The translations under genes and the position numbers were made by a program. DNA of 64,000 nt from Auanema rhodensis (taxonomy: Eukaryota > Animalia > Nematoda), in assembly GCA_964057225.1 (NCBI GenBank), contig OZ059897.1:16492001-16556000 (forward strand), read 5' to 3'. The notes under the pieces are model-generated. The model saw only the letters and a program-made list of their open reading frames with translations. It was not told the origin of the DNA and did not search any database. Within the stretch, counting starts at the first letter, position 1, and each line of letters opens with the position of its first letter. This document shows, in pieces, positions 39,161 through 64,000 of this stretch.

Positions 39161-39184
39161 TCCGGCCGGCGCCTAACATCTTAT

Positions 39185-42100
39185 GTGATGCCGAGGTCAG
39201 CAGTTCGATCCTGCTATGGAGCAAAGTTTTGGCTCTGGCTGGCGCCTAATGTTTTCTTGGTATCTATGAAAAAACAGATTGTTCAGAATGTTTTTTGATA
39301 GTGTCTATAGCTCCATTGGCGCAGTTGGTTAGCGCGTGGTACTTATAAGTATAAGTGATGCCGAGGTCAGCAGTTCGATCCTGCTATGGAGCAAAGTTTT
39401 GGCTCTGGCTGGCGCCTAATGTTTTCTTGGTATCTATGAAAAACAGATTGTTCAGAATGTTTTTTGATTGTGTCTATAGCTCCATTGGCGCAGTTGGTTA
39501 GCGCGTGGTACTTATAAGTATAAGTGATGCCGAGGTCAGCAGTTCGATCCTGCTATGGAGCAAAGTTTTGGCTCTGGCTGGCGCCTAATGTTTTCTTGGT
39601 ATATATGAAAAACAGATTGTTCAGAATGTTTTTTGATTGTGTCTATAGCTCCATTGGCGCAGTTGGTTAGCGCGTGGTACTTATAAGTATAAGTGATGCC
39701 GAGGTCAGCAGTTCGATCCTGCTATGGAGCAAAGTTTTAGCTCCGTTCGGCGCCTAATGTTTTCTTGGTATCCATGAAAAACAGATTGTTCAGAATGTTT
39801 TTTGATTGTGTCTATAGCTCCATTGGCGCAGTTGGTTAGCGCGTGGTACTTATAAGTATAAGTGATGCCGAGGTCAGCAGTTCGATCCTGCTATGGAGCA
39901 AAGTTTTGGCTCTGGCTGGCGCCTAATGTTTTCTTGGTATCTATGAAAAACAGATTGTTCAGAATGTTTTTTGATTGTGTCTATAGCTCCATTGGCGCAG
40001 TTGGTTAGCGCGTGGTACTTATAAGTATAAGTGATGCCGAGGTCAGCAGTTCGATCCTGCTATGGAGCAAAGTTTTAGCTCCGTTCGGCGCCTAATGTTT
40101 TCTTGGTATCTATGAAAAACAGATTGTTCAGAATGTTTTTTGATTGTGTCTATAGCTCCATTGGCGTAGTTGGTTAGCGCGTGGTACTTATAAGTATAAG
40201 TGATGCCGAGGTCAGCAGTTCGATCCTGCTATGGAGCAAAGTTTTAGCTCCGTTCGGCGCCTAATGTTTTCTTGGTATCCATGAAAAACAGATTGTTCAG
40301 AATGTTTTTTGATTGTGTCTATAGCTCCATTGGCGCAGTTGGTTAGCGCGTGGTACTTATAAGTATAAGTGATGCCGAGGTCAGCAGTTCGATCCTGCTA
40401 TGGAGCAAAGTTTTGGCTCTGGCTGGCGCCTAATGTTTTCTTGGTATCTATGAAAAACAGATTGTTCAGAATGTTTTTTGATTGTGTCTATAGCTCCATT
40501 GGCGCAGTTGGTTAGCGCGTGGTAGTTATAAGTATAAGTGATGCCGAGGTCAGCAGTTCGATCCTGCTATGGAGCAAAGTTTTGGCTCTGGCTGGCGCCT
40601 AATGTTTTCTTGGTATCTATGAAAAACAGATTGTTCAGAATGTTTTTTGATAGTGTGTATAGCTCCATTGGCGCAGTTGGTTAGCGCGTGGTACTTATAA
40701 GTGTAAGTGATGCCGAGGTCAGCAGTTCGATCCTGCTATGGAGCAAAGTTTTAGCTCCGTTCGGCGCCTAATGTTTTCTTGGTATCTATGAAAAACAGAT
40801 TGTTCAGAATGTTTTTTGATTGTGTCTATAGCTCCATTGGCGCAGTTGGTTAGCGCGTGGTACTTATAAGTATAAGTGATGCCGAGGTCAGCAGTTCGAT
40901 CCTGCTATGGAGCAAAGTTTTGGCTCTGGCTGGCGCCTAATGTTTTCTTGGTATCTATGAAAAACAGATTGTTCAGAATGTTTTTTGATAGTGTGTATAG
41001 CTCCATTGGCGCAGTTGGTTAGCGCGTGGTACTTATAAGTGTAAGTGATGCCGAGGTCAGCAGTTCGATCCTGCTATGGAGCAAAGTTTTAGCTCCGTTC
41101 GGCGCCTAATGTTTTCTTGGTATCAATGAAAAACAGATTGTTCAGAATGTTTTTTGATTGTGTCTATAGCTCCATTGGCGCAGTTGGTTAGCGCGTGGTA
41201 CTTATAAGTATAAGTGATGCCGAGGTCAGCAGTTCGATCCTGCTATGGAGCAAAGTTTTGGCTCTGGCTGGCGCCTAATGTTTTCTTGGTATCTATGAAA
41301 AACAGATTGTTCAGAATGTTTTTTGATTGTGTCTATAGCTCCATTGGCGCAGTTGGTTAGCGCGTGGTACTTATAAGTATAAGTGATGCCGAGGTCAGCA
41401 GTTCGATCCTGCTATGGAGCAAAGTTTTAGCTCCGTTCGGCGTCTAATGTTTTCTTGGTATCTATGAAAAACAGATTGTTCAGAATGTTTTTTGATTGTG
41501 TCTATAGCTCCATTGGCGCAGTTGGTTAGCGCGTGGTACTTATAAGTATAAGTGATGCCGAGGTCAGCAGTTCGATCCTGCTATGGAGCAAAGTTTTGGC
41601 TCTGGCTGGCGCCTAATGTTTTCTTGGTATCTATGAAAAACAGATTGTTCAGAATGTTTTTTGATTGTGTCTATAGCTCCATTGGCGCAGTTGGTTAGCG
41701 CGTGGTACTTATAAGTATAAGTGATGCCGAGGTCAGCAGTTCGATCCTGCTATGGAGCAAAGTTTTAGCTCCGTTCGGCGCCTAATGTTTTCTTGGTATC
41801 TATGAAAAACAGATTGTTCAGAATGTTTTTTGATTGTGTCTATAGCTCCATTGGCGCAGTTGGTTAGCGCGTGGTACTTATAAGTATAAGTGATGCCGAG
41901 GTCAGCAGTTCGATCCTGCTATGGAGCAAAGTTTTGGCTCTGGCTGGCGCCTAATGTTTTCTTGGTATCTATGAAAAACAGATTGTTCAGAATGTTTTTT
42001 GATTGTGTGTATAGCTCCATTGGCGCAGTTGGTTAGCGCGTGGTACTTATAAGTATAAGTGATGCCGAGGTCAGCAGTTCGATCCTGCTATGGAGCAAAG

Positions 42101-45100
42101 TTTTGGCTCTGGCTGGCGCCTAATGTTTTCTTGGTATCTATGAAAAACAGATTGTTCAGAATGTTTTTTGATTGTGTCTATAGCTCCATTGGCGCAGTTG
42201 GTTAGAGCGTGGTACTTATAAGTATAAGTGATGCCGAGGTCAGCAGTTCGATCCTGCTATGGAGCAAAGTTTTGGCTCTGGCTGGCGCCTAATGTTTTCT
42301 TGGTATATATGAAAAACAGATTGTTCAGAATGTTTTTTGATTGTGTCTATAGCTCCATTGGCGCAGTTGGTTAGCGCGTGGTACTTATAAGTATAAGTGA
42401 TGCCGAGGTCAGCAGTTCGATCCTGCTATGGAGCAAAGTTTTGGCTCTGGCTGGCGCCTAATGTTTTCTTGGTATCTATGAAAAACAGATTGTTCAGAAT
42501 GTTTTTTGATTGTGTCTATAGCTCCATTGGCGCAGTTGGTTAGCGCGTGGTACTTATAAGTATAAGTGATGCCGAGGTCAGCAGTTCGATCCTGCTATGG
42601 AGCAAAGTTTTAGCTCCGTTCGGCGCCTAATGTTTTCTTGGTATCAATGAAAAACAGATTGTTCAGAATGTTTTTTGATTGTGTCTATAGCTCCATTGGC
42701 GCAGTTGGTTAGCGCGTGGTACTTATAAGTATAAGTGATGCCGAGGTCAGCAGTTCGATCCTGCTATGGAGCAAAGTTTTAGCTCCGTTCGGCGCCTAAT
42801 GTTTTCTTGGTATCCATGAAAAACAGATTGTTCAGAATGTTTTTTGATTGTGTCTATAGCTCCATTGGCGCAGTTGGTTAGCGCGTGGTACTTATAAGTA
42901 TAAGTGATGCCGAGGTCAGCAGTTCGATCCTGCTATGGAGCAAAGTTTTAGCTCCGTTCGGCGCCTAATGTTTTCTTGGTATCTATGAAAAACAGATTGT
43001 TCAGAATGTTTTTTGATTGTGTCTATAGCTCCATTGGCGCAGTTGGTTAGCGCGTGGTACTTATAAGTATAAGTGATGCCGAGGTCAGCAGTTCGATCCT
43101 GCTATGGAGCAAAGTTTTGGCTCTGGCTGGCGCCTAATGTTTTCTTGGTATCTATGAAAAACAGATTGTTCAGAATGTTTTTTGATTGTGTGTATAGCTC
43201 CATTGGCGCAGTTGGTTAGCGCGTGGTACTTATAAGTATAAGTGATGCCGAGGTCAGCAGTTCGATCCTGCTATGGAGCAAAGTTTTGGCTCTGGCTGGC
43301 GCCTAATGTTTTCTTGGTATCTATGAAAAACAGATTGTTCAGAATGTTTTTTGATTGTGTCTATAGCTCCATTGGCGCAGTTGGTTAGCGCGTGGTACTT
43401 ATAAGTATAAGTGATGCCGAGGTCAGCAGTTCGATCCTGCTATGGAGCAAAGTTTTGGCTCTGGCTGGCGCCTAATGTTTTCTTGGTATCTATGAAAAAC
43501 AGATTGTTCGGAATGTTTTTTGATTGTGTCTATAGCTCCATTGGCGCAGTTGGTTAGCGCGTGGTACTTATAAGTATAAGTGATGCCGAGGTCAGCAGTT
43601 CGATCCTGCTATGGAGCAAAGTTTTAGCTCCGTTCGGCGCCTAATGTTTTCTTGGTATCTATGAAAAACAGATTGTTCAGAATGTTTTTTGATTGTGTCT
43701 ATAGCTCCATTGGCGCAGTTGGTTAGCGCGTGGTACTTATAAGTATAAGTGATGCCGAGGTCAGCAGTTCGATCCTGCTATGGAGCAAAGTTTTAGCTCC
43801 GTTCGGCGCCTAATGTTTTCTTGGTATCCATGAAAAACAGATTGTTCAGAATGTTTTTTGATTGTGTCTATAGCTCCATTGGCGCAGTTGGTTAGCGCGT
43901 GGTACTTATAAGTATAAGTGATGCCGAGGTCAGCAGTTCGATCCTGCTATGGAGCAAAGTTTTAGCTCCGTTCGGCGCCTAATGTTTTCTTGGTATCTAT
44001 GAAAAACAGATTGTTCAGAATGTTTTTTGATTGTGTCTATAGCTCCATTGGCGCAGTTGGTTAGCGCGTGGTACTTATAAGTATAAGTGATGCCGAGGTC
44101 AGCAGTTCGATCCTGCTATGGAGCAAAGTTTTGGCTCTGGCTGGCGCCTAATGTTTTCTTGGTATCTATGAAAAACAGATTGTTCAGAATGTTTTTTGAT
44201 TGTGTGTATAGCTCCATTGGCGCAGTTGGTTAGCGCGTGGTACTTATAAGTATAAGTGATGCCGAGGTCAGCAGTTCGATCCTGCTATGGAGCAAAGTTT
44301 TGGCTCTGGCTGGCGCCTAATGTTTTCTTGGTATCTATGAAAAACAGATTGTTCAGAATGTTTTTTGATTGTGTCTATAGCTCCATTGGCGCAGTTGGTT
44401 AGAGCGTGGTACTTATAAGTATAAGTGATGCCGAGGTCAGCAGTTCGATCCTGCTATGGAGCAAAGTTTTGGCTCTGGCTGGCGCCTAATGTTTTCTTGG
44501 TATATATGAAAAACAGATTGTTCAGAATGTTTTTTGATTGTGTCTATAGCTCCATTGGCGCAGTTGGTTAGCGCGTGGTACTTATAAGTATAAGTGATGC
44601 CGAGGTCAGCAGTTCGATCCTGCTATGGAGCAAAGTTTTGGCTCTGGCTGGCGCCTAATGTTTTCTTGGTATCTATGAAAAACAGATTGTTCAGAATGTT
44701 TTTTGATTGTGTCTATAGCTCCATTGGCGCAGTTGGTTAGCGCGTGGTACTTATAAGTATAAGTGATGCCGAGGTCAGCAGTTCGATCCTGCTATGGAGC
44801 AAAGTTTTAGCTCCGTTCGGCGCCTAATGTTTTCTTGGTATCAATGAAAAACAGATTGTTCAGAATGTTTTTTGATTGTGTCTATAGCTCCATTGGCGCA
44901 GTTGGTTAGCGCGTGGTACTTATAAGTATAAGTGATGCCGAGGTCAGCAGTTCGATCCTGCTATGGAGCAAAGTTTTAGCTCCGTTCGGCGCCTAATGTT
45001 TTCTTGGTATCCATGAAAAACAGATTGTTCAGAATGTTTTTTGATTGTGTCTATAGCTCCATTGGCGCAGTTGGTTAGCGCGTGGTACTTATAAGTATAA

Positions 45101-47818
45101 GTGATGCCGAGGTCAGCAGTTCGATCCTGCTATGGAGCAAAGTTTTAGCTCCGTTCGGCGCCTAATGTTTTCTTGGTATCTATGAAAAACAGATTGTTCA
45201 GAATGTTTTTTGATTGTGTCTATAGCTCCATTGGCGCAGTTGGTTAGCGCGTGGTACTTATAAGTATAAGTGATGCCGAGGTCAGCAGTTCGATCCTGCT
45301 ATGGAGCAAAGTTTTGGCTCTGGCTGGCGCCTAATGTTTTCTTGGTATCTATGAAAAACAGATTGTTCAGAATGTTTTTTGATTGTGTGTATAGCTCCAT
45401 TGGCGCAGTTGGTTAGCGCGTGGTACTTATAAGTATAAGTGATGCCGAGGTCAGCAGTTCGATCCTGCTATGGAGCAAAGTTTTGGCTCTGGCTGGCGCC
45501 TAATGTTTTCTTGGTATCTATGAAAAACAGATTGTTCAGAATGTTTTTTGATTGTGTCTATAGCTCCATTGGCGCAGTTGGTTAGAGCGTGGTACTTATA
45601 AGTATAAGTGATGCCGAGGTCAGCAGTTCGATCCTGCTATGGAGCAAAGTTTTGGCTCTGGCTGGCGCCTAATGTTTTCTTGGTATATATGAAAAACAGA
45701 TTGTTCAGAATGTTTTTTGATTGTGTCTATAGCTCCATTGGCGCAGTTGGTTAGCGCGTGGTACTTATAAGTATAAGTGATGCCGAGGTCAGCAGTTCGA
45801 TCCTGCTATGGAGCAAAGTTTTGGCTCTGGCTGGCGCCTAATGTTTTCTTGGTATCTATGAAAAACAGATTGTTCAGAATGTTTTTTGATTGTGTCTATA
45901 GCTCCATTGGCGCAGTTGGTTAGCGCGTGGTACTTATAAGTATAAGTGATGCCGAGGTCAGCAGTTCGATCCTGCTATGGAGCAAAGTTTTAGCTCCGTT
46001 CGGCGCCTAATGTTTTCTTGGTATCAATGAAAAACAGATTGTTCAGAATGTTTTTTGATTGTGTCTATAGCTCCATTGGCGCAGTTGGTTAGCGCGTGGT
46101 ACTTATAAGTATAAGTGATGCCGAGGTCAGCAGTTCGATCCTGCTATGGAGCAAAGTTTTAGCTCCGTTCGGCGCCTAATGTTTTCTTGGTATCCATGAA
46201 AAACAGATTGTTCAGAATGTTTTTTGATTGTGTCTATAGCTCCATTGGCGCAGTTGGTTAGCGCGTGGTACTTATAAGTATAAGTGATGCCGAGGTCAGC
46301 AGTTCGATCCTGCTATGGAGCAAAGTTTTAGCTCCGTTCGGCGCCTAATGTTTTCTTGGTATCTATGAAAAACAGATTGTTCAGAATGTTTTTTGATTGT
46401 GTCTATAGCTCCATTGGCGCAGTTGGTTAGCGCGTGGTACTTATAAGTATAAGTGATGCCGAGGTCAGCAGTTCGATCCTGCTATGGAGCAAAGTTTTGG
46501 CTCTGGCTGGCGCCTAATGTTTTCTTGGTATCTATGAAAAACAGATTGTTCAGAATGTTTTTTGATTGTGTCTATAGCTCCATTGGCGCAGTTGGTTAGC
46601 GCGTGGTACTTATAAGTATAAGTGATGCCGAGGTCAGCAGTTCGATCCTGCTATGGAGCAAAGTTTTGGCTCTGGCTGGCGCCTAATGTTTTCTTGGTAT
46701 CTATGAAAAACAGATTGTTCAGAATGTTTTTTGATTGTGTGTATAGCTCCATTGGCGCAGTTGGTTAGCGCGTGGTACTTATAAGTATAAGTGATGCCGA
46801 GGTCAGCAGTTCGATCCTGCTATGGAGCAAAGTTTTGGCTCGGGCTGGCGCCTAATGTTTTCTTGGTATCTATGAAAAACAGATTGTTCAGAATGTTTTT
46901 TGATTGTGTGTATAGCTCCATTGGCGCAGTTGGTTAGCGCGTGGTACTTATAAGTATAAGTGATGCCGAGGTCAGCAGTTCGATCCTGCTATGGAGCAAA
47001 GTTTTGGCTCGGGCTGGCGCCTAATGTTTTCTTGGTATCTATGAAAAACAGATTGTTCAGAATGTTTTTTGATTGTGTGTATAGCTCCATTGGCGCAGTT
47101 GGTTAGCGCGTGGTACTTATAAGTATAAGTGATGCCGAGGTCAGCAGTTCGATCCTGCTATGGAGCAAAGTTTTGGCTCGGGCTGGCGCCTAATGTTTTC
47201 TTGGTATCTATGAAAAACAGATTGTTCAGAATGTTTTTTGATTGTGTCTATAGCTCCATTGGCGCAGTTGGTTAGCGCGTGGTACTTATAAGTATAAGTG
47301 ATGCCGAGGTCAGCAGTTCGATCCTGCTATGGAGCAAAGTTTTAGCTCGGGCTGGCGCCTAATGTTTTCTTGGTATCCATGAAAAACAGATTGTTCAGAA
47401 TGTTTTTTGATTGTGTCTATAGCTCCATTGGCGCAGTTGGTTAGCGCGTGGTACTTATAAGTATAAGTGATGCCGAGGTCAGCAGTTCGATCCTGCTATG
47501 GAGCAAAGTTTTAGCTCCGTTCGGCGCCTAATGTTTTCTTGGCATCAATGAAAAACAGATTGTTCAGAATGTTTTTTGATTGTGTCTATAGCTCCATTGG
47601 CGCAGTTGGTTAGCGCGTGGTACTTATAAGTATAAGTGATGCCGAGGTCAGCAGTTCGATCCTGCTATGGAGCAAAGTTCTAGCTCCGTTCGGCGCCTAA
47701 TGTTTTCTTGGTATCCATGAAAAACAGATTGTTCAGAATGTTTTTTGATTGTGTCTATAGCTCCATTGGCGCAGTTGGTTAGCGCGTGGTACTTATAAGT
47801 ATAAGTGATGCCGAGGTC
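39185..47818 (+). repeat. Tandem tRNA-Ile(UAU) array, left block: 169-bp unit, 50 complete genes plus truncated end copies
   Basis: tRNA starts at 39310+169n up to 47760 (exactly 50 periods). The copy at 47760 is cut after GAGGTC. Confidence 0.98.
39310..39393 (+). tRNA. tRNA-Ile-TAT: tRNA-Ile(UAU) with 10-nt intron; first complete copy, repeated every 169 bp
   Basis: GCTCCAT/ATGGAGC acceptor stem, GCGC/GCGC D-stem, TGGTA/TGCCG anticodon stem, CT-TAT-A loop, intron AGTATAAGTG after position 37, AGCAG/CTGCT T-stem with TTCGATC loop, discriminator A, and a TTTT terminator 3 nt downstream. Confidence 0.96.
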
Positions 47819-49160
47819 CGTTCCATTCGGACTCCCCATATATGTAGCTGAAGGGTTAGAGCCAGACGACCAGAGGACCGAGGAATGGCTCCGCCTTCCC
47901 TCGTTCCCTTGGTCGGGAGTTCGCCTCTTAGCAAGCTCATGGACGGCTTGTAGTTTAGTCTTTATACTTATATTTATCTTATTGTATTGTATCTTTATCT
48001 TTGTATATTATTGTTGTAGTTTCATGCTAATAAATCTTTCTCTCTTTTATCTTATGATTGACCTTATGCTCTTTATTCCTTACCGCTACACCAAGGAATA
48101 CTATGCGCGTCATAGTATAAACTACAATGGTTTATATTATCGACGCAGGAGCATAACGGAACGTGGAGGTTCCACCTCGAACTCATCTTTTGAAAAAAAA
48201 AATTTTCTTTTTATTGTAAAAGTCCATTTTTGCATTCTAAATTATAAATTCCTCCACTTGAAACAACAAAATGAAGGCGCCAATTTGTTTTAAGGTACAG
48301 ATACAAGGGATCTCGCTTAAATGCGAGATAGGACCAATAAAAATTTTGCCCGCTGTCCTCAATTAAAACCGTCTGAATGTCCACCCTTTTCTATATCGTA
48401 TCTTGTACCGCTTCTCATGCCATTTTGAGGACGTTTGGATTGAAATAGAGGACAATTTCGCCAAACGAGAAAATATAGTTGTTCACATTTTTTTTTGGGG
48501 GCATAGAGAAGTTTGATTATTGGAACAAAAATTTATAAGACGCGCGCAATTGATTATAGTTTGTATATTTTGTGGTCAGGACTAGAATTTTGAAATTATT
48601 ATATTCAGACGTAAAAGATCATTTTACATATTATTTTGCGGGAAACCAAAAACGGTTACATAAATTGAATATAAAAAGAGACCACACTAGTCCGAAAAAG
48701 CCTGGTAAATCTGCAATAAGACTTCTCAGCTCTTATTTGACAGTCAGGTCAAGTTGGCGGAAGCATAACTGCTACGGATTTTATCCCCGTAGATTATGTC
48801 ACCTTCCTCAAATCATTTCGTTGTTTCAACTCATAAGATACCCCTTATCTCCTACAGTAATCCTAAGTAAATTGGAAATGTTTAAAAATAGACGTATTTT
48901 TCTCATTTTCAAAAAGAAATTCGCTTAGGAAAACGCACTTTTGCTTATTTTGATCGAGAAAAGGGACAGCCTTTTCAATAACTCTCCTCAAACCTCATTA
49001 GCATGCACAATGTCGAAAACATTTTGAGCAAAACATGCTATTTAAGGAAAAAGGAATGAGGAAAAGATTGAAAACATAAGTCCATTTTCTTGACGAAAAC
49101 AGAGCAAAGCGCATAAAAAAAAAAAATAAAAAAAAAAAACAGAGTACAAGCTTTATTCAG

Positions 49161-49683
49161 TCAAAAACCCCACTTGAAAGCTAGCTGTCTTTCAAACTCT
49201 GCAGCAAGAGAGATAGGCTCGTAACTGGGGGAGAGGTATTCGGGATACTCTCTCCCCAGTGAGGTCCTCAGCTGCAATCCAAGCGATGAGCTATCATAAC
49301 ATACATGCATTTTAAACAAAATTTTACATAATAATTCATAGAATAAAGGCTGCCTCTCGGTATACCATCTCCAGGGACTTCCTACAAGTCCACACAGGAG
49401 AGCGGCATAAAAATGCGCGCACAGGTCACGGAGACAGAGACGCCCTACGAGCTCAATCTCGGGCGCAATTTCCGCCATAGCGGAAAAATTAACGAGGCCC
49501 CTGCCCAAATAGAACATTTGCAGATCCTCAATAAACTAAAATAGAAAAAAGAAAATACTGAAAATTGAAATTGACTAATGCACCAACCATTAATATTATA
49601 TCAGGATGGGGCCTATAAGCCAATCTCTCTTCAGCATCATAAAAGACAATAACGTCATACAGCTTTTGCATGACAAAGGTCAT
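49161..49683 (-). CDS. Orphan two-exon gene (~156 aa) in the inserted unit, copy 1
   Basis: Exon 49683-49588 (MTFVMQKLYDVIVFYDAEERLAYRPHPDIILM), a 52-bp GT-AG intron, and exon 49535-49161 (FIEDLQMFYLGRG...AFKWGF). AATAAA lies a few bases after the stop, followed by a T-tract. GC content is elevated. Confidence 0.6.
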
Positions 49684-52384
49684 TCCAGTAGGCTAGACGC
49701 TCATTTTTAAGAATTCTTAGCTCTCAAAAATAATAAAATCTAGCTTGGTAAACAAGAGAAAAAAGGGGGACAAAAACATGATTGAAAGCTACTAGTGAAG
49801 AGAGAAATTAAAGGAAGTACAAGCGGAAAGTGCAAGAGCGGATAAAAAAAAAAAGTTTTTGAGAAGAGATAAACACCATTAACTATAATAAGCTTACGGT
49901 AGATAGGCGGAGTCAGATTGTTGGCCAAGATTTGGAAAACTCCCTCTCATTTACCCTCCGCATCGCCCAGCAAAGCATGACTATCCTATTGCTCCCGAAT
50001 CTTTCTCTCTCCCAACACACATCTAAAAGAATCTTACGCACCTTACGTCAACATCCCACACGTAGCTCACCATTCTCGGTTTTTCCAAACCAAGAGTCCT
50101 ATAAAGGTGGCCAAAAGATTCTCATCGGCTTTCCGAGCCCTTTACCCGTCCGATACCAACAGTGACGCTACTGTCGCAAGTCGTCGCAGAAGCCGTACCC
50201 GACTTCTTAGTGTTCAAATAGAAAAACTGCACCAACCAGCCGAGAAGCCGAAGCCGCAAGTCGACCAGTTTTATACTCCCCGAGAAGGAACATATTCACC
50301 TTCTGACGACACCTACGAAGATCCGGACTTCATCATAGCCGACGACAGAAAAAATTTTTATATACATTCTTTTCTTTTCTGTAGATTGTAAAATGAAAGT
50401 AACGGTGAATTAGAAAAATTTTGATGAGAGATTAAGAGAATAAACAACCAAAAATAAGGAATAAGTGAAAATATAATATAAATAATAGGCTACCGTACTC
50501 CTTTACGACGATAGAGATAGTCTATCGCACTAAATTGAGCTCCATATGTATCTCCAAGAAGAGACGAAAATTGGCAGGCGCCTAAGCCACACCCCATCTG
50601 AGTGGTAGCCTCCATTAGTACTCAAGGATTCATTCAGAGAGACACATGAAGACGAAAACAATTAATAACTAAAAATCTTTATCCCCATCATCATTAGGAT
50701 ACGAGTAACCATGCACGCAAAAAGTTGAATAATTCCTTATTATCTCACATAAATCTCAAATTCATGGAACAATTTTTTTTATTACAGTACTACAATGACT
50801 AAATTTATTTTTCTAATCCTCCGTTACAAAATAACATAAAACCTATTATTGTATTCAAATTCTATCTTAATACCATAAAGAAACCTATTAAAACTATTTA
50901 TATATCTTTCTACATGTAGATTTTAAAACTTTTAATTTTATTTGTAAACTCCTAGACTCTAAAACTCAGCTACATATACACTAAAAACACTTTATATCGC
51001 GCGGACGCGAAAAATCTTTGAAAAAGGGCACGTTCCATTCGGACTCCCCATATATGTAGCTGAAGGGTTAGAGCCAGACGACCAGAGGACCGAGGAATGG
51101 CTCCGCCTTCCCTCGTTCCCTTGGTCGGGAGTTCGCCTCTTAGCAAGCTCATGGACGGCTTGTAGTTTAGTCTTTATACTTATATTTATCTTATTGTATT
51201 GTATCTTTATCTTTGTATATTATTGTTGTAGTTTCATGCTAATAAATCTTTCTCTCTTTTATCTTATGATTGACCTTATGCTCTTTATTCCTTACCGCTA
51301 CACCAAGGAATACTATGCGCGTCATAGTATAAACTACAATGGTTTATATTATCGACGCAGGAGCATAACGGAACGTGGAGGTTCCACCTCGAACTCATCT
51401 TTTGAAAAAAAAAATTTTCTTTTTATTGTAAAAGTCCATTTTTGCATTCTAAATTATAAATTCCTCCACTTGAAACAACAAAATGAAGGCGCCAATTTGT
51501 TTTAAGGTACAGATACAAGGGATCTCGCTTAAATGCGAGATAGGACCAATAAAAATTTTGCCCGCTGTCCTCAATTAAAACCGTCTGAATGTCCACCCTT
51601 TTCTATATCGTATCTTGTACCGCTTCTCATGCCATTTTGAGGACGTTTGGATTGAAATAGAGGACAATTTCGCCAAACGAGAAAATATAGTTGTTCACAT
51701 TTTTTTTTGGGGGCATAGAGAAGTTTGATTATTGGAACAAAAATTTATAAGACGCGCGCAATTGATTATAGTTTGTATATTTTGTGGTCAGGACTAGAAT
51801 TTTGAAATTATTATATTCAGACGTAAAAGATCATTTTACATATTATTTTGCGGGAAACCAAAAACGGTTACATAAATTGAATATAAAAAGAGACCACACT
51901 AGTCCGAAAAAGCCTGGTAAATCTGCAATAAGACTTCTCAGCTCTTATTTGACAGTCAGGTCAAGTTGGCGGAAGCATAACTGCTACGGATTTTATCCCC
52001 GTAGATTATGTCACCTTCCTCAAATCATTTCGTTGTTTCAACTCATAAGATACCCCTTATCTCCTACAGTAATCCTAAGTAAATTGGAAATGTTTAAAAA
52101 TAGACGTATTTTTCTCATTTTCAAAAAGAAATTCGCTTAGGAAAACGCACTTTTGCTTATTTTGATCGAGAAAAGGGACAGCCTTTTCAATAACTCTCCT
52201 CAAACCTCATTAGCATGCACAATGTCGAAAACATTTTGAGCAAAACATGCTATTTAAGGAAAAAGGAATGAGGAAAAGATTGAAAACATAAGTCCATTTT
52301 CTTGACGAAAACAGAGCAAAGCGCATAAAAAAAAAAAATAAAAAAAAAAAAAAAAAAAAAAAACAGAGTACAAGCTTTATTCAG

Positions 52385-52907
52385 TCAAAAACCCCACTTG
52401 AAAGCTAGCTGTCTTTCAAACTCTGCAGCAAGAGAGATAGGCTCGTAACTGGGGGAGAGGTAATCGGGATACTCTCTCCCCAGTGAGGTCCTCAGCTGCA
52501 ATCCAAGCGAAGAGCTATCATAACATACATGCATTTTAAACAAAATTTTACATAATAATTCATAGAATAAAGGCTGCCTCTCGGTATACCATCTCCAGGG
52601 ACTTCCTACAAGTCCACACAGGAGAGCGGCATAAAAATGCGCGCACAGGTCACGGAGACAGAGACGCCCTACGAGCTCAATCTCGGGCGCAATTTCCGCC
52701 ATAGCGGAAAAATTAACGAGGCCCCTGCCCAAATAGAACATTTGCAGATCCTCAATAAACTAAAATAGAAAAAAGAAAATACTGAAAATTGAAATTGACT
52801 AATGCACCAACCATTAATATTATATCAGGATGGGGCCTATAAGCCAATCTCTCTTCAGCATCATAAAAGACAATAACGTCATACAGCTTTTGCATGACAA
52901 AGGTCAT
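52385..52907 (-). CDS. Orphan two-exon gene, copy 2
   Basis: Same as copy 1, with one E>D and one synonymous difference. Confidence 0.55.
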
Positions 52908-53418
52908 TCCAGTAGGCTAGACGCTCATTTTTAAGAATTCTTAGCTCTCAAAAATAATAAAATCTAGCTTGGTAAACAAGAGAAAAAAGGGGGACAAAAA
53001 CATGATTGAAAGCTACTAGTGAAGAGAGAAATTAAAGGAAGTACAAGCGGAAAGTGCAAGAGCGGATAAAAAAAAAAAGTTTTTGAGAAGAGATAAACAC
53101 CATTAACTATAATAAGCTTACGGTAGATAGGCGGAGTCAGATTGTTGGCCAAGATTTGGAAAACTCCCTCTCATTTACCCTCCGCATCGCCCAGCAAAGC
53201 ATGACTATCCTATTGCTCCCGAATCTTTCTCTCTCCCAACACACATCTAAAAGAATCTTACGCACCTTACGTCAACATCCCACACGTAGCTCACCATTCT
53301 CGGTTTTTCCAAACCAAGAGTCCTATAAAGGTGGCCAAAAGATTCTCATCGGCTTTCCGAGCCCTTTACCCGTCCGATAACAACAGTGACGCTACTGTCG
53401 CAAGTCGTCGCAGAAGCC

Positions 53419-56400
53419 TTGTTCAGAATGTTTTTTGATTGTGTCTATAGCTCCATTGGCGCAGTTGGTTAGCGCGTGGTACTTATAAGTATAAGTGATG
53501 CCGAGGTCAGCAGTTCGATCCTGCTATGGAGCAAAGTTTTGGCTCTGGCTGGCGCCTAATGTTTTCTTGGTATCTATGAAAAACAGATTGTTCAGAATGT
53601 TTTTTGATTGTGTCTATAGCTCCATTGGCGCAGTTGGTTAGCGCGTGGTACTTATAAGTATAAGTGATGCCGAGGTCAGCAGTTCGATCCTGCTATGGAG
53701 CAAAGTTTTGGCTCTGGCTGGCGCCTAATGTTTTCTTGGTATCTATGAAAAACAGATTGTTCAGAATGTTTTTTGATTGTGTGTATAGCTCCATTGGCGC
53801 AGTTGGTTAGCGCGTGGTACTTATAAGTATAAGTGATGCCGAGGTCAGCAGTTCGATCCTGCTATGGAGCAAAGTTTTGGCTCGGGCTGGCGCCTAATGT
53901 TTTCTTGGTATCTATGAAAAACAGATTGTTCAGAATGTTTTTTGATTGTGTGTATAGCTCCATTGGCGCAGTTGGTTAGCGCGTGGTACTTATAAGTATA
54001 AGTGATGCCGAGGTCAGCAGTTCGATCATGCTATGGAGCAAAGTTTTGGCTCTGGCTGGCGCCTAATGTTTTCTTGGTATCTATGAAAAACAGATTGTTC
54101 AGAATGTTTTTTGATTGTGTCTATAGCTCCATTGGCGCAGTTGGTTAGCGCGTGGTACTTATAAGTATAAGTGATGCCGAGGTCAGCAGTTCGATCCTGC
54201 TATGGAGCAAAGTTTTGGCTCTGGCTGGCGCCTAATGTTTTCTTGGTATCTATGAAAAACAGATTGTTCAGAATGTTTTTTGATTGTGTGTATAGCTCCA
54301 TTGGCGCAGTTGGTTAGCGCGTGGTCCTTATAAGTATAAGTGATGCCGAGGTCAGCAGTTCGATCCTGCTATGGAGCAAAGTTTTGGCTCGGGCTGGCGC
54401 CTAATGTTTTCTTGGTATCTATGAAAAACAGATTGTTCAGTATGTTTTTTGATTGTGTCTATAGCTCCATTGGCGCAGTTGGTTAGCGCGTGGTACTTAT
54501 AAGTATAAGTGATGCCGAGGTCAGCAGTTCGATCCTGCTATGGAGCAAAGTTTTAGCTCGGTTCGGCGCCTAATGTTTTCTTGGTATCTATGAAAAACAG
54601 ATTGTTCAGAATGTTTTTTGATTGTGTCTATAGCTCCATTGGCGCAGTTGGTTAGCGCGTGGTACTTATAAGTATAAGTGATGCCGAGGTCAGCAGTTCG
54701 ATCCTGCTATGGAGCAAAGTTTTGGCTCTGGCTGGCGCCTAATGTTTTCTTGGTATCTATGAAAAACAGATTGTTCAGAATGTTTTTTGATTGTGTGTAT
54801 AGCTCCATTGGCGCAGTTGGTTAGCGCGTGGTACTTATAAGTATAAGTGATGCCGAGGTCAGCAGTTCGATCCTGCTATGGAGCAAAGTTTTGGCTCGGG
54901 CTGGCGCCTAATGTTTTCTTGGTATCTATGAAAAACAGATTGTTCAGAATGTTTTTTGATTGTGTGTATAGCTCCATTGGCGCAGTTGGTTAGCGCGTGG
55001 TACTTATAAGTATAAGTGATGCCGAGGTCAGCAGTTCGATCATGCTGTGGAGCAAAGTTTTGGCTCTGGCTGGCGCCTAATGTTTTCTTGGTATCTATGA
55101 AAAACAGATTGTTCAGAATGTTTTTTGATTGTGTGTATAGCTCCATTGGCGCAGTTGGTTAGCGCGTGGTCCTTATAAGTATAAGTGATGCCGAGGTCAG
55201 CAGTTCGATCCTGCTATGGAGCAAAGTTTTGGCTCGGGCTGGCGCCTAATGTTTTCTTGGTATCTATGAAAAACAGATTGTTCAGAATGTTTTTTGATTG
55301 TGTCTATAGCTCCATTGGCGCAGTTGGTTAGCGCGTGGTACTTATAAGTATAAGTGATGCCGAGGTCAGCAGTTCGATCCTGCTGTGGAGCAAAGTTTTG
55401 GCTCTGGCTGGCGCCTAATGTTTTCTTGGTATCTATGAAAAACAGATTGTTCAGAATGTTTTTTGATTGTGTCTATAGCTCCATTGGCGCAGTTGGTTAG
55501 CGCGTGGTACTTATAAGTATAAGTGATGCCGAGGTCAGCAGTTCGATCCTGCTATGGAGCAAAGTTTTGGCTCTGGCTGGCGCCTAATGTTTTCTTGGTA
55601 TCTATGAAAAACAGATTGTTCAGAATGTTTTTTGATTGTGTGTATAGCTCCATTGGCGCAGTTGGTTAGCGCGTGGTCCTTATAAGTATAAGTGATGCCG
55701 AGGTCAGCAGTTCGATCCTGCTATGGAGCAAAGTTTTGGCTCGGGCTGGCGCCTAATGTTTTCTTGGTATCTATGAAAAACAGATTGTTCAGAATGTTTT
55801 TTGATTGTGTCTATAGCTCCATTGGCGCAGTTGGTTAGCGCGTGGTACTTATAAGTATAAGTGATGCCGAGGTCAGCAGTTCGATCCTGCTATGGAGCAA
55901 AGTTTTGGCTCTGGCTGGCGCCTAATGTTTTCTTGGTATCTATGAAAAACAGATTGTTCAGAATGTTTTTTGATTGTGTCTATAGCTCCATTGGCGTAGT
56001 TGGTTAGCGCGTGGTACTTATAAGTATAAGTGATGCCGAGGTCAGCAGTTCGATCCTGCTATGGAGCAAAGTTTTAGCTCCGTTCGGCGCCTAATGTTTT
56101 CTTGGTATCCATGAAAAACAGATTGTTCAGAATGTTTTTTGATTGTGTCTATAGCTCCATTGGCGCAGTTGGTTAGCGCGTGGTACTTATAAGTATAAGT
56201 GATGCCGAGGTCAGCAGTTCGATCCTGCTATGGAGCAAAGTTTTGGCTCTGGCTGGCGCCTAATGTTTTCTTGGTATCTATGAAAAACAGATTGTTCAGA
56301 ATGTTTTTTGATTGTGTCTATAGCTCCATTGGCGCAGTTGGTTAGCGCGTGGTACTTATAAGTATAAGTGATGCCGAGGTCAGCAGTTCGATCCTGCTAT

Positions 56401-59400
56401 GGAGCAAAGTTTTGGCTCTGGCTGGCGCCTAATGTTTTCTTGGTATCTATGAAAAACAGATTGTTCAGAATGTTTTTTGATTGTGTGTATAGCTCCATTG
56501 GCGCAGTTGGTTAGCGCGTGGTACTTATAAGTATAAGTGATGCCGAGGTCAGCAGTTCGATCCTGCTATGGAGCAAAGTTTTGGCTCGGGCTGGCGCCTA
56601 ATGTTTTCTTGGTATCTATGAAAAACAGATTGTTCAGAATGTTTTTTGATTGTGTGTATAGCTCCATTGGCGCAGTTGGTTAGCGCGTGGTACTTATAAG
56701 TATAAGTGATGCCGAGGTCAGCAGTTCGATCCTGCTATGGAGCAAAGTTTCGGCTCTGGCTGGCGCCTAATGTTTTCTTGGTATCTATGAAAAACAGATT
56801 GTTCAGAATGTTTTTTGATTGTGTGTATAGCTCCATTGGCGCAGTTGGTTAGCGCGTGGTCCTTATAAGTATAAGTGATGCCGAGGTCAGCAGTTCGATC
56901 CTGCTATGGAGCAAAGTTTTGGCTCTGGCTGGCGCCTAATGTTTTCTTGGTATCTATGAAAAACAGATTGTTCAGAATGTTTTTTGATTGTGTCTATAGC
57001 TCCATTGGCGTAGTTGGTTAGCGCGTGGTACTTATAAGTATAAGTGATGCCGAGGTCAGCAGTTCGATCCTGCTATGGAGCAAAGTTTTAGCTCTGGCTG
57101 GCGCCTAATGTTTTCTTGGTATCTATGAAAAACAGATTGTTCAGAATGTTTTTTGATTGTGTCTATAGCTCCATTGGCGCAGTTGGTTAGCGCGTGGTAC
57201 TTATAAGTATAAGTGATGCCGAGGTCAGCAGTTCGATCCTGCTATGGAGCAAAGTTTTGGCTCTGGCTGGCGCCTAATGTTTTCTTGGTATCTATGAAAA
57301 ACAGATTGTTCAGAATGTTTTTTGATTGTGTGTATAGCTCCATTGGCGCAGTTGGTTAGCGCGTGGTCCTTATAAGTATAAGTGATGCCGAGGTCAGCAG
57401 TTCGATCCTGCTATGGAGCAAAGTTTTGGCTCTGGCTGGCGCCTAATGTTTTCTTGGTATCTATGAAAAACAGATTGTTCAGAATGTTTTTTGATTGTGT
57501 GTATAGCTCCATTGGCGCAGTTGGTTAGCGCGTGGTACTTATAAGTATAAGTGATGCCGAGGTCAGCAGTTCGATCCTGCTATGGAGCAAAGTTTTGGCT
57601 CTGGCTGGCGCCTAATGTTTTCTTGGTATCTATGAAAAACAGATTGTTCAGAATGTTTTTTGATTGTGTGTATAGCTCCATTGGCGCAGTTGGTTAGCGC
57701 GTGGTACTTATAAGTATAAGTGATGCCGAGGTCAGCAGTTCGATCCTGCTATGGAGCAAAGTTTTGGCTCGGGCTGGCGCCTAATGTTTTCTTGGTATCT
57801 ATGAAAAACAGATTGTTCAGAATGTTTTTTGATTGTGTGTATAGCTCCATTGGCGCAGTTGGTTAGCGCGTGGTCCTTATAAGTATAAGTGATGCCGAGG
57901 TCAGCAGTTCGATCCTGCTATGGAGCAAAGTTTTGGCTCGGGCTGGCGCCTAATGTTTTCTTGGTATCTATGAAAAACAGATTGTTCAGAATGTTTTTTG
58001 ATTGTGTCTATAGCTCCATTGGCGCAGTTGGTTAGCGCGTGGTACTTATAAGTATAAGTGATGCCGAGGTCAGCAGTTCGATCCTGCTATGGAGCAAAGT
58101 TTTGGCTCTGGCTGGCGCCTAATGTTTTCTTGGTATCTATGAAAAACAGATTGTTCAGAATGTTTTTTGATTGTGTCTATAGCTCCATTGGCGTAGTTGG
58201 TTAGCGCGTGGTACTTATAAGTATAAGTGATGCCGAGGTCAGCAGTTCGATCCTGCTATGGAGCAAAGTTTTAGCTCCGTTCGGCGCCTAATGTTTTCTT
58301 GGTATCCATGAAAAACAGATTGTTCAGAATGTTTTTTGATTGTGTCTATAGCTCCATTGGCGCAGTTGGTTAGCGCGTGGTACTTATAAGTATAAGTGAT
58401 GCCGAGGTCAGCAGTTCGATCCTGCTATGGAGCAAAGTTTTGGCTCTGGCTGGTGCCTAATGTTTTCTTGGTATCTATGAAAAACAGATTGTTCAGAATG
58501 TTTTTTGATTGTGTCTATAGCTCCATTGGCGCAGTTGGTTAGCGCGTGGTACTTATAAGTATAAGTGATGCCGAGGTCAGCAGTTCGATCCTGCTATGGA
58601 GCAAAGTTTTAGCTCCGTTCGGCGCCTAATGTTTTCTTGGTATCCATGAAAAACAGATTGTTCAGAATGTTTTTTGATTGTGTCTATAGCTCCATTGGCG
58701 CAGTTGGTTAGCGCGTGGTACTTATAAGTATAAGTGATGCCGAGGTCAGCAGTTCGATCCTGCTATGGAGCAAAGTTTTGGCTCTGGCTGGCGCCTAATG
58801 TTTTCTTGGTATCTATGAAAAACAGATTGTTCAGAATGTTTTTTGATTGTGTCTATAGCTCCATTGGCGCAGTTGGTTAGCGCGTGGTACTTATAAGTAT
58901 AAGTGATGCCGAGGTCAGCAGTTCGATCCTGCTATGGAGCAAAGTTTTGGCTCTGGCTGGCGCCTAATGTTTTCTTGGTATCTATGAAAAACAGATTGTT
59001 CAGAATGTTTTTTGATTGTGTGTATAGCTCCATTGGCGCAGTTGGTTAGCGCGTGGTACTTATAAGTATAAGTGATGCCGAGGTCAGCAGTTCGATCCTG
59101 CTATGGAGCAAAGTTTTGGCTCGGGCTGGCGCCTAATGTTTTCTTGGTATCTATGAAAAACAGATTGTTCAGAATGTTTTTTGATTGTGTGTATAGCTCC
59201 ATTGGCGCAGTTGGTTAGCGCGTGGTCCTTATAAGTATAAGTGATGCCGAGGTCAGCAGTTCGATCCTGCTATGGAGCAAAGTTTTGGCTCGGGCTGGCG
59301 CCTAATGTTTTCTTGGTATCTATGAAAAACAGATTGTTCAGAATGTTTTTTGATTGTGTCTATAGCTCCATTGGCGCAGTTGGTTAGCGCGTGGTACTTA

Positions 59401-62400
59401 TAAGTATAAGTGATGCCGAGGTCAGCAGTTCGATCCTGCTATGGAGCAAAGTTTTGGCTCTGGCTGGCGCCTAATGTTTTCTTGGTATCTATGAAAAACA
59501 GATTGTTCAGAATGTTTTTTGATTGTGTCTATAGCTCCATTGGCGTAGTTGGTTAGCGCGTGGTACTTATAAGTATAAGTGATGCCGAGGTCAGCAGTTC
59601 GATCCTGCTATGGAGCAAAGTTTTAGCTCCGTTCGGCGCCTAATGTTTTCTTGGTATCCATGAAAAACAGATTGTTCAGAATGTTTTTTGATTGTGTCTA
59701 TAGCTCCATTGGCGCAGTTGGTTAGCGCGTGGTACTTATAAGTATAAGTGATGCCGAGGTCAGCAGTTCGATCCTGCTATGGAGCAAAGTTTTGGCTCTG
59801 GCTGGCGCCTAATGTTTTCTTGGTATCTATGAAAAACAGATTGTTCAGAATGTTTTTTGATTGTGTCTATAGCTCCATTGGCGCAGTTGGTTAGCGCGTG
59901 GTACTTATAAGTATAAGTGATGCCGAGGTCAGCAGTTCGATCCTGCTATGGAGCAAAGTTTTGGCTCTGGCTGGCGCCTAATGTTTTCTTGGTATCTATG
60001 AAAAACAGATTGTTCAGAATGTTTTTTGATTGTGTGTATAGCTCCATTGGCGCAGTTGGTTAGCGCGTGGTACTTATAAGTATAAGTGATGCCGAGGTCA
60101 GCAGTTCGATCCTGCTATGGAGCAAAGTTTTGGCTCGGGCTGGCGCCTAATGTTTTCTTGGTATCTATGAAAAACAGATTGTTCAGAATGTTTTTTGATT
60201 GTGTGTATAGCTCCATTGGCGCAGTTGGTTAGCGCGTGGTACTTATAAGTATAAGTGATGCCGAGGTCAGCAGTTCGATCCTGCTATGGAGCAAAGTTTC
60301 GGCTCTGGCTGGCGCCTAATGTTTTCTTGGTATCTATGAAAAACAGATTGTTCAGAATGTTTTTTGATTGTGTGTATAGCTCCATTGGCGCAGTTGGTTA
60401 GCGCGTGGTCCTTATAAGTATAAGTGATGCCGAGGTCAGCAGTTCGATCCTGCTATGGAGCAAAGTTTTGGCTCTGGCTGGCGCCTAATGTTTTCTTGGT
60501 ATCTATGAAAAACAGATTGTTCAGAATGTTTTTTGATTGTGTCTATAGCTCCATTGGCGTAGTTGGTTAGCGCGTGGTACTTATAAGTATAAGTGATGCC
60601 GAGGTCAGCAGTTCGATCCTGCTATGGAGCAAAGTTTTAGCTCTGGCTGGCGCCTAATGTTTTCTTGGTATCTATGAAAAACAGATTGTTCAGAATGTTT
60701 TTTGATTGTGTCTATAGCTCCATTGGCGCAGTTGGTTAGCGCGTGGTACTTATAAGTATAAGTGATGCCGAGGTCAGCAGTTCGATCCTGCTATGGAGCA
60801 AAGTTTTGGCTCTGGCTGGCGCCTAATGTTTTCTTGGTATCTATGAAAAACAGATTGTTCAGAATGTTTTTTGATTGTGTGTATAGCTCCATTGGCGCAG
60901 TTGGTTAGCGCGTGGTCCTTATAAGTATAAGTGATGCCGAGGTCAGCAGTTCGATCCTGCTATGGAGCAAAGTTTTGGCTCTGGCTGGCGCCTAATGTTT
61001 TCTTGGTATCTATGAAAAACAGATTGTTCAGAATGTTTTTTGATTGTGTGTATAGCTCCATTGGCGCAGTTGGTTAGCGCGTGGTACTTATAAGTATAAG
61101 TGATGCCGAGGTCAGCAGTTCGATCCTGCTATGGAGCAAAGTTTTGGCTCTGGCTGGCGCCTAATGTTTTCTTGGTATCTATGAAAAACAGATTGTTCAG
61201 AATGTTTTTTGATTGTGTGTATAGCTCCATTGGCGCAGTTGGTTAGCGCGTGGTACTTATAAGTATAAGTGATGCCGAGGTCAGCAGTTCGATCCTGCTA
61301 TGGAGCAAAGTTTTGGCTCGGGCTGGCGCCTAATGTTTTCTTGGTATCTATGAAAAACAGATTGTTCAGAATGTTTTTTGATTGTGTGTATAGCTCCATT
61401 GGCGCAGTTGGTTAGCGCGTGGTCCTTATAAGTATAAGTGATGCCGAGGTCAGCAGTTCGATCCTGCTATGGAGCAAAGTTTTGGCTCGGGCTGGCGCCT
61501 AATGTTTTCTTGGTATCTATGAAAAACAGATTGTTCAGAATGTTTTTTGATTGTGTCTATAGCTCCATTGGCGCAGTTGGTTAGCGCGTGGTACTTATAA
61601 GTATAAGTGATGCCGAGGTCAGCAGTTCGATCCTGCTATGGAGCAAAGTTTTGGCTCTGGCTGGCGCCTAATGTTTTCTTGGTATCTATGAAAAACAGAT
61701 TGTTCAGAATGTTTTTTGATTGTGTCTATAGCTCCATTGGCGTAGTTGGTTAGCGCGTGGTACTTATAAGTATAAGTGATGCCGAGGTCAGCAGTTCGAT
61801 CCTGCTATGGAGCAAAGTTTTAGCTCCGTTCGGCGCCTAATGTTTTCTTGGTATCCATGAAAAACAGATTGTTCAGAATGTTTTTTGATTGTGTCTATAG
61901 CTCCATTGGCGCAGTTGGTTAGCGCGTGGTACTTATAAGTATAAGTGATGCCGAGGTCAGCAGTTCGATCCTGCTATGGAGCAAAGTTTTGGCTCTGGCT
62001 GGTGCCTAATGTTTTCTTGGTATCTATGAAAAACAGATTGTTCAGAATGTTTTTTGATTGTGTCTATAGCTCCATTGGCGCAGTTGGTTAGCGCGTGGTA
62101 CTTATAAGTATAAGTGATGCCGAGGTCAGCAGTTCGATCCTGCTATGGAGCAAAGTTTTAGCTCCGTTCGGCGCCTAATGTTTTCTTGGTATCCATGAAA
62201 AACAGATTGTTCAGAATGTTTTTTGATTGTGTCTATAGCTCCATTGGCGCAGTTGGTTAGCGCGTGGTACTTATAAGTATAAGTGATGCCGAGGTCAGCA
62301 GTTCGATCCTGCTATGGAGCAAAGTTTTGGCTCTGGCTGGCGCCTAATGTTTTCTTGGTATCTATGAAAAACAGATTGTTCAGAATGTTTTTTGATTGTG

Positions 62401-64000
62401 TGTATAGCTCCATTGGCGCAGTTGGTTAGCGCGTGGTACTTATAAGTATAAGTGATGCCGAGGTCAGCAGTTCGATCCTGCTATGGAGCAAAGTTTTGGC
62501 TCGGGCTGGCGCCTAATGTTTTCTTGGTATCTATGAAAAACAGATTGTTCAGAATGTTTTTTGATTGTGTGTATAGCTCCATTGGCGCAGTTGGTTAGCG
62601 CGTGGTCCTTATAAGTATAAGTGATGCCGAGGTCAGCAGTTCGATCCTGCTATGGAGCAAAGTTTTGGCTCGGGCTGGCGCCTAATGTTTTCTTGGTATC
62701 TATGAAAAACAGATTGTTCAGAATGTTTTTTGATTGTGTCTATAGCTCCATTGGCGCAGTTGGTTAGCGCGTGGTACTTATAAGTATAAGTGATGCCGAG
62801 GTCAGCAGTTCGATCCTGCTATGGAGCAAAGTTTTGGCTCTGGCTGGCGCCTAATGTTTTCTTGGTATCTATGAAAAACAGATTGTTCAGAATGTTTTTT
62901 GATTGTGTCTATAGCTCCATTGGCGTAGTTGGTTAGCGCGTGGTACTTATAAGTATAAGTGATGCCGAGGTCAGCAGTTCGATCCTGCTATGGAGCAAAG
63001 TTTTAGCTCCGTTCGGCGCCTAATGTTTTCTTGGTATCCATGAAAAACAGATTGTTCAGAATGTTTTTTGATTGTGTCTATAGCTCCATTGGCGCAGTTG
63101 GTTAGCGCGTGGTACTTATAAGTATAAGTGATGCCGAGGTCAGCAGTTCGATCCTGCTATGGAGCAAAGTTTTGGCTCTGGCTGGCGCCTAATGTTTTCT
63201 TGGTATCTATGAAAAACAGATTGTTCAGAATGTTTTTTGATTGTGTGTATAGCTCCATTGGCGCAGTTGGTTAGCGCGTGGTACTTATAAGTATAAGTGA
63301 TGCCGAGGTCAGCAGTTCGATCCTGCTATGGAGCAAAGTTTTAGCTCCGTTCGGCGCCTAATGTTTTCTTGGTATCCATGAAAAACAGATTGTTCAGAAT
63401 GTTTTTTGATTGTGTCTATAGCTCCATTGGCGCAGTTGGTTAGCGCGTGGTACTTATAAGTATAAGTGATGCCGAGGTCAGCAGTTCGATCCTGCTATGG
63501 AGCAAAGTTTTGGCTCTGGCTGGCGCCTAATGTTTTCTTGGTATCTATGAAAAACAGATTGTTCAGAATGTTTTTTGATTGTGTGTATAGCTCCATTGGC
63601 GCAGTTGGTTAGCGCGTGGTACTTATAAGTATAAGTGATGCCGAGGTCAGCAGTTCGATCCTGCTATGGAGCAAAGTTTTGGCTCGGGCTGGCGCCTAAT
63701 GTTTTCTTGGTATCTATGAAAAACAGATTGTTCAGAATGTTTTTTGATTGTGTGTATAGCTCCATTGGCGCAGTTGGTTAGCGCGTGGTCCTTATAAGTA
63801 TAAGTGATGCCGAGGTCAGCAGTTCGATCCTGCTATGGAGCAAAGTTTTGGCTCGGGCTGGCGCCTAATGTTTTCTTGGTATCTATGAAAAACAGATTGT
63901 TCAGAATGTTTTTTGATTGTGTCTATAGCTCCATTGGCGCAGTTGGTTAGCGCGTGGTACTTATAAGTATAAGTGATGCCGAGGTCAGCAGTTCGATCCT
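53419..64000 (+). repeat. Tandem tRNA-Ile(UAU) array, right block: 62 complete genes, continues past window end
   Basis: tRNA starts at 53450+169n up to 63928 (exactly 62 periods). The last copy is cut by the window edge. Confidence 0.98.

Follow-up and report, generated by a model that had tools for sequence, protein, structure and literature searches.

The right-hand part of a 64,000-nucleotide stretch of Auanema rhodensis DNA (contig OZ059897.1, positions 16,492,001 to 16,556,000 of the forward strand; this whole stretch is called the window here, and coordinates count from its first letter) carries, as assembled, at least 112 head-to-tail copies of a single gene, that for the intron-containing isoleucine tRNA with anticodon UAU, tRNA-Ile(UAU). 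We favor, as a reasonably probable reading of the sequence, a tRNA-gene satellite in which the copies would be individually competent and probably partly expressed, and in which copy number would be set by the dynamics of the array under weak selection on each copy. In its organization the array is a further case, resolved at full length and for a new isoacceptor, of an arrangement already seen in clade V nematodes.

Tandem Repeats Finder, run on the window, reported a period of 169 bp with 97% matches and 0% indels both at 39185-47818 (51.1 copies) and at 53419-64000 (62.6 copies). Cut in register from 39310 and 53450, the two blocks yield 50 and 62 complete units, 112 together, that vary by substitutions only, with no more than seven in any unit. 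Each unit consists of an 84-nt tRNA-Ile(UAU) gene and an 85-nt spacer without internal tandem repeats, which leaves one tRNA gene per unit. With introns limited to 1-40 nt, ARAGORN called exactly 112 tRNA-Ile(tat) genes of 84 nt, every one on the plus strand and interrupted at gene position 39 by a 10-nt intron. With unlimited intron length the program produced chimeric "tRNA-Tyr(ata) with 158-nt intron" calls across two units, which the limit cured, and in its default bacterial mode it labeled the genes "tRNA-???". A preliminary description of this DNA had claimed a satellite-like array of at least 112 such intron-containing genes, with an 84-bp gene and an 85-bp spacer keeping step with no net indel over 50 and 62 periods, and both programs bear it out. 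The copy number is a lower bound, and the second block runs past the end of the window. Two incomplete genes stand beyond the 112, one cut by an interruption of the array and one by the window end. The gathering score of the Rfam tRNA family (RF00005) was reached by 97 of the 112 genes, and the consensus gene scored 50.6 bits end to end over model positions 1-71; a scan of the spacer matched no RNA family in Rfam. A pattern this regular cannot arise by chance. The array has the sequence properties of satellite DNA, being a long tandem array of monomers of 100-200 bp with concerted evolution and higher-order repeats, and equally those of the homogeneous tRNA arrays of nematodes, with one tRNA gene and a short spacer repeated head to tail on one strand in 112 complete copies. 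Its parts are as follows.

39185-47818, plus strand: array block A, comprising a partial unit, 50 complete 169-bp units and a tRNA gene truncated after nucleotide 59 (47760-47818); its first gene is 39310-39393 and its last complete unit 47591-47759.
53419-64000, plus strand: array block B, comprising the last 31 nt of a spacer, 62 complete units and a gene that the window end cuts short (63928-64000); its first gene is 53450-53533 and its last complete unit 63759-63927.
39310-39393, plus strand: representative tRNA-Ile(UAU) gene, with exon 1 at 39310-39347, the intron at 39348-39357 and exon 2 at 39358-39393; the A box is gene nucleotides 8-19 and the B box nucleotides 64-72.
39394-39478, plus strand: representative 85-nt spacer, with a TTTT terminator at 39397-39400 and back-up T4 and T6 runs.

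The gene copies themselves look sound for the most part. The minimum-free-energy fold of the spliced tRNA is a perfect cloverleaf (-23.9 kcal/mol) that presents the anticodon UAU at positions 34-36 in an anticodon loop reading C-U-U-A-U-A-A. The 10-nt intron comprises gene nucleotides 39-48, which is the canonical 37/38 position. In the folded pre-tRNA, a helix joins the ATAAG of the intron to the CTTAT of the anticodon loop, intron G(-3) is the partner of C32, and the 3′ splice site lies in a 3-nt bulge. An anticodon-intron helix combined with a C32:G(-3) pair and a 3-nt bulge is the arrangement used by the eukaryotic splicing endonuclease. Across the array, the gene sequence is identical in 83 of the 112 copies. 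Among the 29 variant copies, 11 carry benign changes, namely C13T (eight copies, a G-U pair), A77G alone (one copy, also a G-U pair), and A42G (two copies, in the intron). Damaging changes are found in 18 of the 112 copies (16%) and include A32C, which breaks pair 31-39 (12 copies), C24A in the D stem (three copies), C33G (one copy), and C72A, which hits the G53-C61 pair (two copies). One of these last two carries A77G together with C72A, bringing A77G to two copies in total. The other 94 copies have no pair-breaking or loop-32 change, and "apparently functional", the label first given to the copies, is a fair one for about 84% of them as judged from their sequence.

Signals for transcription by RNA polymerase III (Pol III) are similarly well kept. 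An unaltered A-box string is present in 104 of the 112 units and an unaltered B-box string in 110, and a T4 terminator lies within 10 nt after the gene in 109 units and within 40 nt in all 112, the consensus T4 starting 3 nt beyond the gene end. The earlier claim of intact boxes and terminators thus holds for most copies, with some altered, and predicted Pol III and splicing signals that are intact in most copies are supported by these counts. A tRNA-derived short interspersed nuclear element, or a set of retroposed copies, was considered and rejected: the units follow each other in strict 169-bp head-to-tail phase, they have no tails, and there are no copies elsewhere in the window except at the inverted left edge of the array. 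Every spacer also contains the hexamer GCCTAA (for example at 39416-39421), which on the opposite strand reads TTAGGC, the telomere hexamer of nematodes. The chance of finding any one hexamer within a 169-bp unit is about 8%, and GCCTAA is therefore given no weight.

The arrangement of the unit variants provides a view of how the array has evolved. There are 30 distinct variants, and they occur in ordered, non-random blocks. Block A contains a higher-order repeat of 7 units (1183 bp) that runs for about three rounds, block B contains an identical run of 17 units twice with starts 21 units (3549 bp) apart, and the two blocks are enriched for different variants. Ordered blocks together with local homogenization are a signature of unequal exchange or segmental duplication. 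The gene is approximately six times less diverse than the spacer (pi of 0.006 versus 0.038), and gene variants stay below the high frequencies that spacer variants reach. Counted as mutational events over equal lengths, the contrast is 7 in the gene versus 15 in the spacer (one-sided binomial p = 0.07). We take this contrast as a hint of constraint on the gene that falls short of proof.

Between the two blocks the array is interrupted by DNA of a different kind.

47819-53418, no strand assigned: array interruption, consisting of 1.74 tandem copies of a 3212-bp non-coding unit.

The interruption can equally be described as direct terminal repeats of 2.38 kb (47819-50194 and 51031-53418) that flank an 836-bp core. 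The repeat copies differ by three mismatches and one 12-nt poly(A) gap, and the phase of the array is lost by 79 nt across the insertion. No target-site duplication was found at 47819-53418, the 3212-bp unit had no match in Pfam or Rfam, and no further copy of it exists in the window. Inspection by eye for Helitron-like and long terminal repeat (LTR)-like termini brought up a single feature compatible with an LTR-like layout, a purine tract ahead of the second repeat. This tract, GAAAAAGGG, stands immediately 5′ of the second direct repeat. Two origins are conceivable for the interrupting element: a non-autonomous element of the LTR-like type, or circular DNA that integrated as a concatemer.

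Units in the opposite orientation form the left edge of the array and fall outside the coordinates that the preliminary description gave for the array.

38876-39160, minus strand: about 1.7 decayed, inverted array units, with a similarity to the array of 94-98% in the inner part and about 80-83% in the outer.
39161-39184, no strand assigned: centre (loop) of the palindromic left boundary, as placed by folding of 38950-39380.

In the outer inverted tRNA copy a 5-nt deletion affects the T arm, and the copy is not recognized as a tRNA any more. A hairpin of about 190 bp forms when segment 38950-39380 is folded (-338 kcal/mol as RNA, z = -45). Taken as a whole, the left edge (38876-39380) consists of about 1.2-1.7 units duplicated head to head in inverted orientation and is capable of forming a hairpin or cruciform. 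The palindrome could be the scar of a fold-back repair event from the origin of the array, or it could be a source of double-stranded RNA. A sub-threshold Rfam match to mir-6012 at 39112-39215 was dismissed as merely the palindrome.

Tandem tRNA gene arrays with one gene and a short spacer have been met before in this part of the nematode tree. Nippostrongylus brasiliensis has close to 150 copies of a tRNA-Trp repeat of about 200 bp and 90 copies of a tRNA-Ser gene with an 80-bp spacer, and the authors remarked on the lack of any such arrays in C. elegans (Eccles et al. 2018, PMC5765664). The likeness to the array described here is close, as N. brasiliensis is a clade V nematode, as the host of the present array probably is, and both join a conserved tRNA gene to a short, species-specific spacer in units of about 160-200 bp that are repeated head to tail about 90-150 times.(PMC5765664) The isoacceptors differ (Trp and Ser), the N. 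brasiliensis genes are intron-less, and the description of that genome includes no Ile(UAU) array, higher-order structure, interruption, or palindromic edge.(PMC5765664) A counterpart of the gene is found in Heterorhabditis bacteriophora, whose genome is likewise AT-rich (32.2% G+C). In Table S7 of that genome paper, a tRNAscan listing, most isoacceptors fall in head-to-tail arrays with periods of about 139-590 bp, often on short contigs made of repeats only.(PMC3715494) Seven tandem Ile-TAT genes on two of its contigs (three on contig0045, four on contig1262) match the present gene in architecture, with a length of 84 nt and an intron of 10 nt that occupies gene positions 39-48.(PMC3715494) They differ in their period of 182-191 bp as against 169 bp, and in having only three or four copies per short contig, where the repeats have probably been collapsed. 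The text of the paper makes no remark on array organization.(PMC3715494) Since nearly all tRNA genes in Table S7 sit in homogeneous arrays of short period, the published total of 254 genes is probably far too low. A period of 169 bp lies inside the H. bacteriophora range, and an argument from nucleosome-scale spacing, which the preliminary description had advanced, is not needed to account for it.

Other systems resemble the array in part. In Arabidopsis thaliana, clustered tRNA genes retain intact A and B boxes and terminators and yet are largely silenced.(PMC10701932) Those clusters also consist of tandem units with Pol III terminators that vary in copy number by gain or loss of whole units, but the units are larger (0.4-1.5 kb) and fewer (27 Ser-Tyr-Tyr units, along with Pro and Cys clusters). 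Their silencing has been put down to repressive histone marks together with methylation of the DNA. Entamoeba, to which the array had initially been compared, does have long tandem arrays of tRNA genes with satellite-like behavior. However, an Entamoeba unit holds up to five different tRNA genes, sometimes with 5S RNA, and short tandem repeats lie between them, the arrays making up more than 10% of the genome.(PMC2652664) One gene per unit and a spacer without short tandem repeats rule out an array of the Entamoeba type here. The comparison also overlooked the closer clade V precedents, which lower the novelty of the array. Finally, the dispersed satellites of holocentric nematodes share the monomer size class, the placement of tandem arrays among genes, and a fast turnover, but they are non-genic (PMC3634726), whereas here the monomer amounts to an entire Pol III gene.

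Searches for relatives of the unit itself gave little. A pattern spanning the intron of the gene had no match in metagenome contigs and none in prokaryotic genome contigs, and short pieces of the 169-bp unit had no match in the literature searched; in these collections the spacer turned up nowhere outside the window. A 30-nt pattern from the 5′ half had one match, metagenome contig MDSZ01255420.1. Positions 31-1162 of that AT-rich contig carry 13 different tRNA genes within 1.2 kb, among them an intron-less tRNA-Ile(TAT). It shares a 30-nt stretch of D arm and anticodon stem with the window gene and is unrelated to the array.

Whether the genome could need so many copies was approached through codon usage and published gene totals. 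In the 11 mapped exons of the two genes nearest the array, those for triosephosphate isomerase (TPI) and a CWC27-like cyclophilin (423 codons), isoleucine is encoded by ATT 21 times, ATC 7 times and ATA 5 times, 33 codons in all. AUA thus accounts for 15% of the Ile codons, a small but steady share. Whole tRNA gene sets of nematodes have been reported as 254 genes in H. bacteriophora, 659 in C. elegans, 233 in Brugia malayi and 467 in Meloidogyne incognita (PMC3715494), although a comparison with these totals is soft because the short-read assemblies behind them collapse arrays. At least 112 Ile(UAU) genes is a large number against any of these, and the earlier suggestion of an excess over decoding need is plausible on that soft footing.

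In the reading that we favor, one nuclear tRNA-Ile(UAU) transcription unit, the 84-nt gene with its 85-nt flank and terminator, would have multiplied head to tail into at least 112 copies, probably by unequal crossing-over or replication-based segmental duplication, with concerted evolution thereafter. The copies would be individually competent and some at least would be transcribed, and the array would probably be the source of most AUA-decoding tRNA genes of the genome. A copy number above need would then reflect array dynamics, as seems to be the case in other clade V nematodes, and not a separate structural function. The surroundings agree with this reading, as the array adjoins housekeeping genes (TPI and the CWC27-like gene) rather than repeat-only DNA. 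Several observations nevertheless count against it. The Arabidopsis clusters show that intact-looking tRNA genes may be largely silenced, and a long palindrome at the edge of the array could feed silencing of the RNA interference (RNAi) type. Moreover, the 16% of copies that are damaged and the amplification of the damaging A32C itself to 12 copies indicate that per-copy selection is weak, while the contrast between gene and spacer is non-significant by event counts and the diversity of the spacer is inflated by a few old, subfamily-defining variants.

These same observations lend themselves to a different account, to which we allow a real but minor chance. The array may be a silent satellite that derives from a tRNA gene and sits in repressive chromatin, under histone H3 lysine 9 (H3K9) methylation or nuclear RNAi, with little or no tRNA output, in which case its intact look would come from recent amplification and homogenization and not from selection. 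Epigenetically silenced clusters with intact boxes and terminators exist in Arabidopsis (PMC10701932), the A32C variant has been amplified within blocks, the signal of selection is marginal at p = 0.07, and the inverted repeat of about 190 bp at the left edge could yield double-stranded RNA if it is transcribed. A silent array is harder to square with a gene diversity six-fold below that of the spacer and with the lack of any gene variant at a spacer-like high frequency, nor would one expect it beside housekeeping genes. The H. bacteriophora precedent also argues against silence as a rule, since almost all tRNA genes of that species are arrayed and the arrays there cannot all be silent.

A role in chromosome biology seems improbable to us. 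Under such a role the array would be kept as a TFIIIC/condensin platform, a boundary, an element related to the holocentromere, or germline-restricted DNA. As indirect context, several Rhabditina, early-diverging Caenorhabditis among them, discard satellite-rich DNA (PMC13370393), a boundary function has been suggested for a tandem tRNA repeat in humans (PMC4041453), and the window stops inside the array, which leaves room for a position at a chromosome end. However, no feature of the sequence demands such a function, the 169-bp period is within the ordinary range of nematode tRNA arrays, telomeric repeats were not found in the window, and an ordinary housekeeping gene lies about 240 bp from the start of the array. 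The structural roles raised in the preliminary description (platform, boundary, chromosome end, germline-restricted repeat, or source of tRNA fragments) find no support in the sequence. More narrowly framed, as germline-restricted DNA lost from the soma by programmed DNA elimination or as a Pol III/TFIIIC-condensin platform of a holocentric chromosome with the palindromic edge as its boundary, the idea is one to which we would give very little credence. Least credible of all is an artefact in which the assembler expanded a short cluster, or the length of the array. Exact multi-kilobase duplicates, such as the 17-unit runs 3549 bp apart, are prone to mis-sizing, but an artefact would not be expected to contain 30 unit variants in ordered blocks, two blocks of different composition, a unique interruption, and a decayed inverted boundary, and comparable arrays have been seen by long reads in another nematode, N. 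brasiliensis.(PMC5765664)

Much depends on how many of the copies are active. If most of them are, one locus would set the supply of AUA-reading tRNA; its copy number could shift fast by unequal exchange, providing a natural system in which to study tRNA dosage control in an animal lineage. If they are silent, the array shows that gene counts, and the codon-adaptation indices built on them, can be greatly inflated by tRNA genes that look intact. Together with the data from Nippostrongylus and Heterorhabditis, the array suggests that clade V genomes in general contain short-period tRNA arrays, which have been under-described and have become visible only since the advent of long-read assembly.

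The sequence to the left of the array contains ordinary genes, of which the two nearest are listed here.

35499-36505, plus strand: triosephosphate isomerase (TPI) gene, seven exons with introns of 42-46 nt.
36728 to about 38638, plus strand: CWC27-like cyclophilin gene, a housekeeping gene of the left flank.

The two genes lie on the same strand in an operon-like arrangement, with 222 nt between the TPI stop (36505) and the CWC27-like ATG (36728), and the boundary of the array begins about 240 bp past the stop of the latter. Their C. elegans orthologues, tpi-1 and cyn-16, are presumably neighbors too. All mapped introns are 42-46 nt long and have GT-AG ends. The TPI exons are 87-88% identical to PDB 1MO0, which we take to be the C. 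elegans enzyme, 83% identical to a fragment from Cooperia oncophora and 74.5% identical to one from Meloidogyne enterolobii. Other products predicted in the left flank are a BAR/ankyrin ArfGAP-type (ACAP-like) protein, a fragment of an inositol-pentakisphosphate kinase and a BRCT protein. The TPI, CWC27-like, and ACAP-like gene models were searched exon by exon and not as joined proteins. With a 139-aa exon of the ACAP-like gene, a word search and a full HMMER search brought up no genuine relatives, the best-scoring match being a spurious repetitive protein; a word search with the TPI exons reached 83% identity at best, and none of 10 open reading frames of the window had an exact counterpart in the collection searched. 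By sequence, the flanking genes appear nearest to those of C. elegans and point to a Rhabditina-like (clade V) nematode with an AT-rich genome. The 169-bp satellite families of Meloidogyne were considered as possible relatives of the array and set aside, as TPI is 74.5% identical to M. enterolobii versus 83-88% to clade V species and the terminal 16-mer of M. hapla is absent from the window. The published accounts of root-knot nematode satellites that we examined mention no tRNA in them.

No other tRNA gene was found in the left 39 kb, which has 23-35% G+C and few long open reading frames. Within it, positions 1-17000 (23-31% G+C) are almost devoid of long open reading frames and contrast with the gene-dense sequence at 17-39 kb. 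Simple tracts are present in this first part, with (AT)n at 5090, 15036, and 16277 and (CT)n at 9349.

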